A stretch of 63,065 nt of DNA, the filler included, from Reticulomyxa filosa (lineage: Eukaryota > Protista > Foraminifera): NCBI GenBank assembly GCA_000512085.1. It is 24 parts of 24 records of this genome, joined end to end, with 100 filler letters (N's around TTAATTAATTAA, not from the genome) between each part and the next. Parts side by side here need not be neighbours in the genome. Positions count along the whole stretch, not along the records: positions 23,629 to 25,057 come from ASPP01022794.1; 23 more parts are not named here. The stretch is one strand, 5' to 3'. Under the pieces are notes generated by a model. That model did no database searches. It saw nothing but the letters and a program-made list of their open reading frames with translations, and had not been told where the DNA came from. Both the position numbers and the translations under genes were made by a program. Within the stretch, counting starts at the first letter, position 1. Every line of letters starts with the position of its first letter. Below are positions 1-25,057 of the stretch, in pieces.

Positions 1-3000
1 TCACCTTGATGTTGAAGCTCTGCCATCGAATAAGCATGTATTTGTTGTTGTTGTTGCAATTTGTCTGGTTTCAAATATTGTGGTGTGTTGTTGTTATTAT
101 TGGTCGACACGGGGAGCGTCATGCCTGGTGTCTGTTGTAAACTCAATAACAATTGCTTTACAATTTCCTGAGTTATCTTTTCTGTCTGTTCGCTCGTCAT
201 CGCGGTTGTTCCATTGCCATGTTTTTTATTGGGACCAACTTGCGCTTCCTTATTGAACATTTCGACCACTTTGGCAAACTCCTGACGTAATTGCTCGTCT
301 CCAAGGATATGAGACATCAGCTCTTCTACGCCTGGATTTGTTGATGTTCCTTTTGCTTTTGCTTTTCCCTTTGTTTCTTCTTCTTCTTCTTCTTCTTCTT
401 CGTGTTCGTGTTCTTCCGTTTCTAGTGCTGTTTCTTTATTCGTTTGTTTGTTTCGAGGTTTCTCGACTGCTGCAGCTGTCGCAGTTGTCACTTCATTGTT
501 CCCGTCCGTTCCGGTCGTTTCTGCGTCCGAATCAGATTCGCTCCTGCTACTATTTGATTTTTGCTGGTATTGTTCATTGGTAGCGATTCGCATTGCCTTT
601 TCGTCCTTTCGCTCCTTTTCTTCCGATTCATGGATTATCGTTGTTGGACTTCGTCGCTTCGCTTGGTTCTTGTCCGTTTCCAATGTTTGTCTTGCCATCA
701 AGTTATTTCCGTGACCACCTTTTTTGTGGTTCTGTTTTTTTTTCCCCCCCCCCCAAGGACAAGGGAGATGTACAACAACATAGAGCTAGCATTTCTATAC
801 AATATATATGTATGCATATATGTAACTTTGTTTTGGGTATCGTCTTGAGCATCATGTTGCTTCTGCTGCAATTTTTTGGGATCATTTGCATGCTTCTGTT
901 GTGCCTTTTGCTGATTGAATCGATTCAATTTTTGGTCGTCTTCACTCTCATTTGTTTCATTGGCTTCGTGTTCATGTTCATGTTCATGTTCATGTTCATG
1001 CTCGTGCTCGTCTGCTTGTTCACTGGTGCTGTCGCCATCCATTTCAATGTTTGATCCTTCCGTGTGTAAATCGGTGTCACTTTTGGAGAGCTGTTCGTCT
1101 TCCAGTCGGAACGTGCCATGTCTCTCCAATTCAATTTTTTTGTTATGCTTGTTTTTGTTTTTGTCTTTATTTTTATCTTTGTCTTTATCTTTATCTTTTT
1201 CTTTGTTTTTGGTTTGTTTTTATTGTTATTGTCATTGTTGTTGTCACTGTCATTATTATTGTTTTCATCAGTCGCGTTCAAGCCATTCTTCATTTGCGGC
1301 TGAGAAATCCTTTTTTTGTTTTTGTCTACTGTTTGGCCGTGTTTATCGGGTTCATTCTTTGACAGCCTTTTTGCTGGCTCTACTTTATTGGTAACATTTT
1401 TCGTTTGTTCATTTTGATTTTGATTTTGATTCCCTTGATTCTGCTGTTCCTCTTTTTTAACTTTGTATTTTTGCAGACCTTCGTTGTTGTCTTTGCCATT
1501 GAGAAGATTGTTGGTCTGTTCCTTTTTGTTTGCGTCATTAGCAGTTGCTTGCTTCGCTTGCTGTTGTTTTGTGTCAGCTTTCGTGTTGGCCGCCGGTTCG
1601 TTGGCAGCCTGTGGTGCAGCCCTTGTGACCGTGGGCTTTTTTGGTTCTGGTTTCGCTTGTATCACGGGCGACGACGACAGCTCGGGATGCACCGGCCCAT
1701 TCAGTGGAGACTGCAAGGTACTGACCGTGTTGCTAAATTGCGGGGGGCGATTGGAAATCCCTTTTTTTTTTATATGTGTGTGTGTGTGTGATGTTGATTT
1801 GAGCAAATAGTAGTCAAACAAATAACTGTGACAATACACAAAGATATGATATCACAGAAACATAGATAACATAAAAGCGAACCAATGTTTTCCTTGTCAT
1901 CGACTGTGTAAATAAAACCTTCTTCGTCTTCGCTTTCCAAATACATGCCCTGTCGAGATGAGTTGTTTTGCGAGCTGTTTTTGGGTGGATTTGGCGAAGA
2001 GGTTTTCGCTGTCTTGTTGTTTGGCTTGGGATTGTCTTCTCGCGCTTCCATTGCTTTTTGCTTTGCAATCTCGGCACGTGCTGCTGTTGCTACTGCACTT
2101 ACACTAGTAGCGGTAGTGGCAGTGGTAGTGGCCGGGGCTGCTTTTTTCGCTTCTTCTTTGCCTGTCTCGGCTTTTGCTTGAACAGGTCCATTTTTCTGTC
2201 TCTGGGTTGGCGTTTTATCCGCTTCGTCGTTGATTTTTGCTTTTGAAACATTTGCTTTTCCATGTTCGTCTTTGTGTTTTTCTTTTTCTTTTTCTTTTTC
2301 CTCTTCTTCCTCGTTTTCTTCTTGCTTTTGGCTATTGTCATTCTCCTCGTCTTCGTCGTCATCTTCCTCTTCCACATCCTCTATTGCTTCTTCTTCTTCT
2401 TCTTCTTCTTCTTCTTCTTCTTCTTCTTCTTCTTCTTCGTCCAATTCCTCAATATCCTCATTGTCATTTTCATCCACTTCGTCGTCTTCTTCTTCTTCTT
2501 CCTCTTCTTTTTCCTTGTCGTTCTCCTCGTCCTCTTCTTCTTCATCTTCTTCGGTCCCTGTCTCGTCATCGTCGGTATGCTTGTTTTTATGCTTGTATTC
2601 GGGACCGCGCACTTCTTGAGCACTTTGCTTGTTTGCCAACCTATTGAGTGTCGCATTTGAAACATTTGACTTTTTCACATCTTGTTTATTCTCTCTCGAC
2701 TCCTCTGCAAAGTTGTTTCCCACATCAGTCTTTATTTATTTTATTTTGGTTATTATTATTATCATTATTTACTTATTATTTTTAAAAAAAAAAGTCACGT
2801 ATAACAATGGAAATGGAAACACTTGTATGATGATGATACAAAAAATTTATGAACCCTTTTTTTTGTGTGGGTATAGTGTCATGCAAAAAAAAAAAAAACC
2901 CTGAACAATGGAAGGTTTTGGTTTGATTGAGTCTATTTTATCGAGAACGACATTAATGACATCATTTTTGGCAGAGGAGGCTCGACTGTTGATTTGAGAC

Positions 3001-23628: not shown

Positions 23629-25057
23629 CAAACTGCAGTTGCAGTGATGAAGAAGGCAGAACAATTCAATTTGATTGTATCTGAAGATAAGGATTTCTTT
23701 GATAAACAATCAAAAACACACCACCGATTCCATAATATTAAATTGTATGTTCCAAAACATGATGTATATATTGAAATGCAAGCAACACTGAAGAATTTTA
23801 CAACATTGGAAGGATATACTGTGATCGAAAATCCAAAATTAAGCCATTTATTCTATGAACATATTCGAGCATGGAAACCAAATAATTCATCAAAAGAAGA
23901 GGAATTAAAACAAGCAAGTGATGAAACATTGACTAAAATCAATGATATAATTTGTGAGTGGATTGACGAAAAAGAAATCAAAAAAATTGCAAATCGTTAC
24001 AGGCCACATTCAAAAATTCAAATCTTGAAACCTCCACAATTAAAAGAAATAAACGATGAAGAAATCAATGCCAAAAATGATAACAAATTAAAATTAACAA
24101 AATTTGTTTATGATCAACTTTGTAAATTCAATCCAGTGAAAATGAAAGGACAAGCTATTTATGTTATTTTATTTGAATATTTCAAAAAACATATTATGGG
24201 TGAACTGAATCCAGCAAGCTGTGCTGATGTTATATCAATATTGAAAGAATCAAGAAGACAAGAATTAGAAGAAGATACAACAATGTTACAAGCCCTTGAA
24301 ACATATATTCCATTGCATGCAAATAATTATTCATACACCGATAGTGATGATAACAAAAACAGTAACGCACATGATTGCCATCAACATATAGTCAATTTGT
24401 TGACAGAAGAGGAAAAAAGTGTAGTACAAATGCAACAACAAGTAATAGTATTACAAGGGAAATCAGGATCAGGTAAAAGTTTATTCTGTCGTCATTTAGA
24501 AGAAACTTTGTGGGAATCACATGTAAATGGTTCTATAACATCCATACCAATCTATATTTCATTGCCAAAATGTTATAATGAATTAAATGAAAAACAAGTA
24601 ATTATTCAAGCTCTACAAATGAAGCAAATCAGTAAAGAGATAATCGATGTTGTTCGTGAAAATATTTCATTTGTACTTATTTTGGATGGATTTGATGAAA
24701 TATTTGACAAATATAATAAAAATAGTAAAGAAAGATATTTTTATGATCGATTCAATTTAAATGAATGGAATGCAAAAGTAATAGTAACATGTCGAAGTCA
24801 TGTATTAAATGATGAAGATATTAAACATGTTTTAATTGGCTCAAAGAACATTACAACAACATCAATGATATATTTATGGCCTTTTTCAAAAGATCAAATG
24901 AATGGATATATTGATAAATTTGTGAAAATGAATAAAAATAAAGTAAATGATAATTTGGATTGGACAATACAACAATATGAAGAAACATTAAATAATTTTC
25001 CAAATTTACATACAATGATGGAAGAACCATTTTTACTTCGAATGATATTAACTGTAT
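23629..25057 (+). CDS. NACHT (STAND) NTPase with an upstream RelA/SpoT-like nucleotidyltransferase segment, truncated at both ends
   Basis: One open frame spans the whole contig. Walker A GKSGSGKS (24457-24480), Walker B FVLILDGFDE (to 24699), sensor VIVTCR, PFS..Y and PFLLRM motifs. The N-terminal assignment is less certain than the NACHT. Confidence 0.85.

Follow-up and report, generated by a model that had tools for sequence, protein, structure and literature searches.

The gene fragment at positions 23,629 to 25,057 of a 63,065-nucleotide stretch of Reticulomyxa filosa DNA raises the question of whether this foraminiferan places an enzyme of the RelA/SpoT homologue (RSH) type in front of the NACHT NTPase domain of a NOD-like receptor (NLR; NOD, nucleotide-binding oligomerisation domain) and, if so, what such an enzyme would make. 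The stretch, hereafter the window, consists of 24 parts of 24 records of assembly GCA_000512085.1, joined with 100 filler letters between each part and the next, and the fragment is the part taken from ASPP01022794.1. An earlier note, made from the sequence alone, had read the region before the NACHT domain as the C-terminal half of a RelA/SpoT-like nucleotidyltransferase and had proposed a receptor that makes a nucleotide signal. We find that the fragment is the middle part of an R. filosa NLR-like gene of the STAND type (signal transduction ATPases that have numerous domains) and, on sequence comparison and modelling, that it encodes the predicted C-terminal half of a divergent RSH pyrophosphokinase-type domain, with a helical linker and then a NACHT NTPase after it. 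In our assessment, the complete receptor is probably a pyrophosphokinase resembling the bacterial enzyme Tas1, gated by NACHT and WD40 domains and acting as a direct enzymatic effector, likely one that makes (p)ppApp.

The interval holds a single open reading frame (ORF) of 476 codons in frame +1 (23629..25056, + strand), truncated at both ends by the limits of the 1429-bp contig; ORFs in the other frames all reach at most 59 aa, and the G+C content is 23-31%. The product is 100% identical to a deposited R. filosa protein (P0001, ETO11080.1, "hypothetical protein RFI_26296, partial"), and the motif strings quoted in the earlier note were all verified in frame +1 at their coordinates.

The RSH half and its full-length paralogues

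The first 85 residues of the fragment (23629..23883, + strand) were assigned to the C-terminal half of a Tas1-like RSH pyrophosphokinase domain, with the helix that succeeds strand beta2 at one end and the H..YE helix at the other; the contig starts too late to include the donor-site half, which lies upstream and bears the Mg-binding Asp. The helix SHLFYEHIRAW (aa 72-82, 23842..23874, + strand) carries the H..YE motif known from RSH synthetases and aligns with LGHaLYEIyRv of the Tas1 family and HKYYEDWRV of Tas1 itself. A single-sequence AlphaFold model of the fragment was unusable, with a predicted local distance difference test (pLDDT) score of 38, and the RelA_SpoT lead from an ESM Atlas feature search was weak (0.83). 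By itself, the motif match of the fragment is not demonstrably above chance; only paralogues that contain the whole domain lift it above chance.

An exhaustive phmmer search recovered 59 cluster representatives related to the fragment and a word-indexed protein search recovered 61 long relatives of 750-2000 aa, in addition to many fragments from other searches; judged by sequence similarity, the fragment is one of more than 100 R. filosa paralogues that make up an NLR-like receptor family. Relatives come nearly all from R. filosa, with a few from environmental assemblies (ENA ERZ27276640, JGI 3300030741), and in the word-indexed search, which was aimed at long proteins from other organisms such as fungal NLRs, all 61 of the 61 long matches were from R. 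filosa. Paralogues 72-77% identical to the fragment reach 180-360 residues further upstream and supply the first half of the domain, which the earlier note had correctly placed beyond the contig. The RelA_SpoT family PF04607 was detected in 7 of 10 paralogues scanned, at 16-23.5 bits (E 7e-5 to 0.016; profile positions 3-91 of 113), and precomputed PF04607 flags are present for three proteins (P0015, P0031, and P0122).

A profile built from 21 paralogue sequences (A1) and compared with all Protein Data Bank (PDB) sequences matched the Pseudomonas aeruginosa toxin Tas1 best (6ox6, E 0.0043); this was the sole match below E 0.1, the rows that followed (PCNA, SNAP-25) having E-values of 0.14 or worse, and the alignment covers the K...R...K(I).DY.GD.....D..R.TI block. 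No match to (p)ppGpp synthetases, CapRel, or FaRel2 was obtained with this profile against the PDB. A tblastn search against phages returned nothing, and one against plasmids returned a single weak match (E 0.8) on an Azospirillum plasmid, which led to a family of bacterial Tas1 homologues (A2). The A2 family matches Tas1 with an E-value of 2.6e-46, in addition to classical small alarmone synthetases, and the hhalign comparison of A1 with A2 yielded a probability of 95% and an E-value of 2e-8. Without realignment, hhalign recovered two significant segments, one in the donor-site half (E 9e-9) and the other over the LSH..YE..R.W helix that lies inside the fragment (E 0.004). At the sequence level, the closest recognisable relatives of the R. 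filosa domain are thus members of the Tas1/Apk1 family of bacterial (p)ppApp-synthetase toxins. The Azospirillum oryzae member (plasmid NZ_CP054617.1, L001:2854-3573, WP_149198862.1) is annotated as a 239-aa "hypothetical protein" and is flanked by genes for an ABC amino-acid transporter and a carbohydrate-binding protein; together with about 30 metagenomic relatives it forms a clear Tas1 homologue family that also scores below the Pfam threshold (21.5 bits).

The fold of the domain was predicted with paralogue P0002, which is 82% identical to the fragment over the shared part and served as its proxy. An AlphaFold model of P0002:120-340 built with A1 reached pLDDT 76 and a predicted template modelling score of 0.68. 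In a Foldseek search with this model, Tas1 was the top match (21% identity, E 1.3e-5), ahead of RelP, SAS2, Rel, an exported alarmone synthetase, and CapRel, with modest TM-scores of 0.43-0.48. The VIA-align list was likewise headed by RSH synthetases, which account for all of the top 17 entries (Z 8.1-11.8); Tas1 aligned with Z 11.8 and a root-mean-square deviation of 2.7 over 119 residues, and the nucleotidyltransferases Cid1, CdnE, and cGAS scored below 8. Shape neighbours of the model in the ESM Atlas are annotated RelA_SpoT. The paralogue domain is accordingly modelled with an RSH synthetase fold, and the nucleotidyltransferase fold for which the earlier note had suggested AlphaFold and Foldseek runs is predicted by both. 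Its identification of the pre-NACHT stretch as the C-terminal half of an RSH domain is borne out by the Tas1 profile match, hhalign, the PF04607 hits in paralogues, and the fold.

Several relatives carry the domain in other arrangements. The environmental relative P0023 (L002 gene 60-1475; ENA ERZ27276640, contig k141_134287), 38% identical to the fragment, is a complete 471-aa call comprising a Cys-rich domain, an RSH domain (FDIGRFTI, IEMQ), and a helical region, with no NACHT domain; the RSH module is therefore not confined to NLRs or to the sequenced strain. In protein P0122 (RFI_08856, 1027 aa), the RSH domain occurs twice in tandem (FDxGR at 188 and 570; EMQ at 250 and 632) ahead of one Walker A motif at 861, and this doubling may be a real duplication or an artefact of the gene model or assembly. 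A further paralogue, P0008, begins with a second copy of the region after the ExQ motif.

Catalytic residues, acceptor loop, and constraint

Conservation was counted in 64 paralogue domains. The Asp of FDxGRxTI is present in 64/64, the Glu and the Gln of EMQ in 61/63 each, and the His and Tyr of the SH..YE helix in 61/62 each, whereas the donor-site lysines K60 and K68 are conserved at 97% or more and H169, Y172, and W178 at 98% or more, all of these counts being non-independent because the paralogues are closely related. The upstream catalytic Asp and the ExQ motif, both of which the earlier note had expected of full-length paralogues, are thus kept there, as is the H..YE motif it had recognised in the fragment. 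The donor site, which lies outside the fragment, reads xxKxxxRxxxK in the paralogues compared with the usual RxKxxxSxxxK, with Arg at the position of the Ser, a pattern shared with Tas1.

Within the fragment, the ExQ motif is part of a beta3-beta4 hairpin composed of HNIKLYV, a turn, and VYIEMQATL (23731..23790, + strand; pLDDT 87-88 in the model). The second strand, VYIEMQATL, corresponds to aa 46-54 (23764-23790) and contains the putative catalytic Glu49 (23773-23775) and Gln51 (23779-23781). In six paralogues, the end-points of the Pfam alignments place the Asp at PF04607 position 26 and the Glu at position 86, at which the Azospirillum Tas1 homologue has its invariant Asp79 and Glu143; the spacing from Asp to Glu is 63 residues in the R. 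filosa family versus 64 in that homologue; and the VIA-align ranges (model 21..152 on Tas1 247..368) set the family Glu on Glu361 of Tas1. Sequence alignment over beta3-beta4 is not robust, so that the catalytic Glu is identified from these Pfam end-points, the spacing, and the predicted structure.

The equivalent of the acceptor-site loop ("G-loop") is SEDKDFFDKQSKTHH (aa 18-32, 23680..23724, + strand), which starts with SEDKDFF (aa 18-24, 23680-23700) and ends with THH (aa 30-32, 23716-23724) in place of the xGY of other RSH enzymes. The second His of THH is the putative base-stacking residue, a correspondence with the G-loop that we infer in a part of the model where pLDDT is low. In the paralogues, T126 and H127 are 98% conserved, and the presumed equivalent of the Tyr, position 128 in this poorly modelled loop, is H in 52, Y in 8, F in 1, and D in 1; with H, Y, or F at most of these positions, an aromatic residue is largely retained. 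The earlier note had taken the replacement of GY by HH as a sign that the substrate differs from GDP/GTP. The HH is indeed present in the fragment, but the argument is weak: the adenine-specific Tas1 family keeps GYS and FaRel2 keeps its G-loop stacking Tyr and uses it for adenine (PMC11782079), so that GY is no marker of guanine, and some paralogues have Tyr or Phe.

The fragment was aligned by codons with locus L004 (gene of P0003) and locus L005 (gene of P0002) to compare proportions of nonsynonymous (pN) and synonymous (pS) differences among its parts. In the RSH half (aa 1-85), pN is 0.024 against the P0003 gene and 0.083 against the P0002 gene, compared with 0.206 and 0.133 in the linker and 0.207 and 0.132 in the NACHT domain; pN of the linker is thus about 2-9 times that of the RSH half. 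Values of pS range from 0.42 to 0.73 over the segments (0.64-0.72 in the RSH half) and are near saturation against the P0003 gene, and dN/dS of the RSH half is about 0.01-0.06. No other part of the fragment is as strongly constrained as the RSH half: amino-acid changes in it are 3-9 times fewer than in the NACHT domain, and its pN, the lowest of all, argues for a working domain rather than a decaying relic.

Receptor architecture, proposed mechanism, and alternatives

Complete paralogues share one order of domains: a Cys-rich domain, the RSH domain, a helical linker of about 170 aa, NACHT, pentapeptide repeats, and up to 14 WD40 repeats. In 52/52 proteins that contain both motifs, Walker A comes after the RSH domain, at a median distance of 289 aa, a spacing that the fragment fits, and with WD40 at the C-terminus the protein is an NLR-like STAND protein with an N-terminal RSH domain, as the earlier note had suggested. 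The fragment itself stops before any repeats, and the tripartite layout of effector, NOD, and C-terminal repeats is known from the paralogues.

In the fragment, the RSH half is followed by the family-specific, mostly helical linker (aa 86-258, 23884..24402, + strand), which belongs to no known family. Segments of this linker such as NDIICEWI and AIYVILFEYFKKHI are kept across the paralogues, with no detectable relatives elsewhere, and it may serve to keep the enzyme domain in an inactive state. The NACHT NTPase domain (aa 272-432, 24442..24924, + strand) matches PF05729 with E 1e-10 and 42.2 bits against a cut-off of 26.7, and contains Walker A, GKSGSGKS (24457-24480, + strand), and Walker B, LILDGFDE (24676-24699, + strand). 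Its continuation (aa 433-476, 24925..25056, + strand) is ended by the contig; in paralogues it runs on into the pentapeptide repeats and the WD40 repeats.

The Cys-rich domain of about 100 aa that opens complete paralogues (P0003:30-125 and the same region of P0002, P0004, P0006, and P0011) has the pattern GINL.G.C.N..CLA ... CP.C ... NSEHSI. It matches no Pfam family besides a weak A9CJY8-like_N hit (E 0.0016), in the ESM Atlas it lies nearest to clusters of unannotated rotifer proteins (score 0.94, 217/256 features), and it could be an adaptor or zinc-binding module before the enzyme domain. Pentapeptide repeats (PF00805) lie between NACHT and WD40 in many paralogues, including P0002 and P0003, and the combination of NACHT, pentapeptide, and WD40 domains is otherwise familiar from bacteria. 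In the P0002 gene (L005:3821-3827, facing fragment aa 396-398), tblastn continues in frame past a 2-residue break where the deposited protein omits about 60 residues, and this gap in its NACHT domain probably reflects an intron wrongly called in the deposited gene model.

The mechanism that we consider probable for the complete receptor would begin with the sensing of a ligand by the WD40 end, upon which NACHT would oligomerise and the N-terminal RSH domains, clustered or released, would become active. With ATP as donor, the active domains would pyrophosphorylate an acceptor, most likely an adenine nucleotide, at its 3'-OH, and the making of (p)ppApp with the concomitant drain on ATP would arrest or kill the affected region of the syncytial cell. 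Tas1 and FaRel make toxic (pp)pApp and deplete ATP in this way (PMC11782079). By analogy, a non-guanine acceptor is likely, since the sole sequence-level relatives of the domain are (p)ppApp synthetases. The RSH domain would then be a direct enzymatic effector, comparable to class-1 effector domains of fungal NLRs, and not a relay signal; of the sensor-gated alarmone synthase or toxic small alarmone synthetase (toxSAS)-like effector put forward in the earlier note, we favour the toxSAS-like effector and judge a nucleotide "signal" less likely than a direct toxic effect.

Several results weigh against this interpretation. The fragment carries just half of the domain, and that half is non-significant alone: aa 1-258 have no match in Pfam or NCBIfam and nothing relevant in the PDB by phmmer, PF04607 finds no match in the fragment at E up to 10, and an HMM (hidden Markov model) of Tas1 homologues scores 3.6 bits against the first 100 aa, a value equalled by 19/2000 shuffles and obtained with an alignment at the wrong place. 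Among the ten paralogues scanned, none of the complete ones reaches the PF04607 gathering threshold of 27 bits. The mean column identity of the paralogues is 0.81, which limits what their conservation can say; the first basic residue of RxK is variable among them; and THH stands where GYS is invariant in the bacterial Tas1 family. The Z-scores of the fold do not part Tas1 (11.8) from the (p)ppGpp-making SAS1/2 (11.2) or from CapRel (10.2), and because these values lie so close the substrate is not readable from the fold. Finally, the posterior alignment of hhalign sets HNIKL, not EMQ, on the template AEIQI. This placement, under which the family would have no catalytic Glu, was rejected, as the Pfam end-points in six paralogues, the spacing of 63 versus 64 residues, and the structural ranges favour EMQ as the ExQ motif. 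Given that hhalign leaves the HNIKL/EMQ stretch unaligned when run without realignment, we regard the placement as a misalignment of a poorly scoring stretch in which sequence alone is not decisive.

Some of these results feed two deflationary explanations. That the resemblance is due to chance, or to a general polymerase-beta-type nucleotidyltransferase fold other than RSH, would agree with the non-significance of the fragment alone and with the TM-scores of 0.43-0.48; independent lines nevertheless converge on RSH, namely Pfam in 7 paralogues, the HMM match to Tas1, the hhalign E-value of 2e-8, and the 17 RSH entries that lead the structural list above Cid1, cGAS, and CdnE, and we consider this explanation very improbable. 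A catalytically dead RSH fold serving as an adaptor or oligomerisation module has somewhat more in its favour, given the sub-threshold Pfam scores, the loss of GY, the variable first residue of RxK, and the uncertain alignment of the ExQ strand, but the conservation of Asp, Glu, Gln, K60, K68, and H..Y at 97% or more, together with the lowest pN and a dN/dS of about 0.01-0.06 in the RSH half, makes it quite unlikely, even if constraint alone is no proof of catalysis.

The other alternatives keep the enzyme active and change its acceptor. In one, the domain is a pyrophosphokinase of the tRNA 3'-CCA end, like CapRel, FaRel2, or PhRel, and the receptor shuts down translation instead of draining ATP. 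No aligned structure covers more of the model than CapRel (7ztb, 9erv; 172-176 residues, Z 10.0-10.2), which is an immune effector under the control of a sensor; the remodelled G-loop with THH for GY indicates that acceptor recognition has changed; and the acceptor site of toxSAS enzymes that target tRNA has a less extensive positive patch (PMC11782079). The sequence, however, links the domain to Tas1 and its homologues only, through the DYxGD...DxxRxTI block and the GH..YE..R helix, with no profile match to CapRel or FaRel2, and a basic N-terminal tRNA-binding extension of the FaRel2 type is not evident, although no search aimed at such an extension was made; we view the tRNA target as unlikely, if the least unlikely of these alternatives. 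In another, the domain is a (p)ppGpp synthetase whose product would target bacteria (prey, symbionts, or pathogens) or be used as a stress signal, as proposed by Dyrka et al. for the RelA_SpoT domains of fungal NLRs (PMC4986451). In fold, the model lies just as close to SAS1, SAS2, and RelP (Z 10.5-11.2), some relatives of Tas1, the exported alarmone synthetases, yield (p)ppGpp or both products (PMC12691689), and bacteria are the food of R. filosa. Against it, the family profile has no sequence-level match to (p)ppGpp synthetases, the GY motif is lost, and a cytosolic NLR effector has no obvious route into the bacterial cytoplasm, and we think it about as improbable as the dead domain.

Significance and comparison with known systems

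That RelA_SpoT occurs as an N-terminal effector of fungal NLRs, as the earlier note had stated, is confirmed by published surveys: such effectors are rare, with less than 1% of annotations and 17 in Sordariales, and include a RelA_SpoT-NACHT-WD40 layout (Gaeumannomyces graminis, Sordariales); the surveys list them with no functional assay reported there (PMC4986451; PMC12258605). The view of the R. filosa protein as an undescribed system therefore holds in part. Its layout is known from fungi, which makes it a known design in a new eukaryotic supergroup, but we found no report of it for a foraminiferan or other rhizarian: in the open-access literature searched, Reticulomyxa or any rhizarian was not reported together with NACHT, NLR, or ppGpp, and (p)ppApp or toxSAS enzymes were not linked with eukaryotic NACHT/NLR proteins. 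What is new here is the Tas1-like enzyme module invisible to Pfam, the altered acceptor loop, the extra flanking domains, and the very large copy number.

Receptors of the NLR type with enzymatic N-terminal effectors are now regarded as an ancient immune design found across kingdoms, and eukaryotic NLRs with RelA/SpoT-type effectors have so far been catalogued in fungi only. The present family shows the RSH-NACHT design in Rhizaria, where it is dominant and massively expanded, and the nearest kin of its enzyme module are bactericidal (p)ppApp synthetases, not stringent-response enzymes, which offers a hypothesis for such effectors in general, whereby activation of the receptor would lead to ATP depletion or translation arrest. 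We put forward more tentatively, and with considerable doubt, the larger claim of a family of more than 100 genes in which NACHT and WD40 gate a Tas1-type (p)ppApp synthetase, in which case this giant syncytial foraminifer would be the first eukaryote found to make (p)ppApp and would have an ATP-draining, NLR-executed form of cell death or quarantine. If true, its role could lie in immunity or in self/non-self control on fusion, parallel to heterokaryon incompatibility in fungi, and the family could throw light on how infection or fusion is kept in check in large syncytial protists. The natural His, Tyr, and Phe variants at the stacking site are useful for the study of acceptor specificity.

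Compared by published descriptions, the fungal RelA_SpoT NLRs resemble the R. filosa proteins in the order of RSH-type enzyme, NACHT, and WD40, in their syncytial or filamentous hosts with large, variable NLR repertoires, and in their presumed direct enzymatic effectors. They differ in that the R. filosa family belongs to Rhizaria, begins with an additional Cys-rich domain, has pentapeptide repeats ahead of WD40, carries an RSH domain below the Pfam threshold, and is hugely expanded (at least 61 long proteins plus fragments).

With Tas1/Apk1, the P. aeruginosa type VI effector and (p)ppApp synthetase (6ox6), and its homologues, the R. filosa domain shares the RSH synthetase fold, the K...R...K(I/V)..DY.GD.....D.(A/G)R.TI(I/L) block, the ExQ strand, the (G/S)H..YE..R helix, and a similar spacing from Asp to Glu. 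Identity to Tas1 is about 20%, GYS is replaced by THH in the R. filosa family (Tyr in 8/63), and the latter has 18 fewer residues between ExQ and H..YE; compared with the GG.GH..YE helix of the bacterial proteins, it keeps SH..YE..R.W without the preceding Gly-rich loop and about 18 residues. Whereas Tas1 is a secreted or injected toxin with an immunity protein, the R. filosa domain is the N-terminal module of a eukaryotic NACHT-WD40 protein. The fused toxSAS-antitoxin phage-defence protein CapRel(SJ46) (7ztb; Z 10.2 over 176 residues) likewise places a sensor-gated RSH toxin domain in immunity. Its gate is a C-terminal pseudo-zinc-finger antitoxin domain within a single small protein and its target is tRNA, whereas the gate in R. 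filosa would be a STAND NTPase with WD40 repeats, and no sequence-level similarity to CapRel was detected. RelQ/SAS1, RelP/SAS2, and the long RelA/SpoT/Rel enzymes have the same catalytic fold and order of motifs as the R. filosa domain, but keep GY and RxK, make (p)ppGpp, and are regulators of the stringent response and not modules of NLRs.

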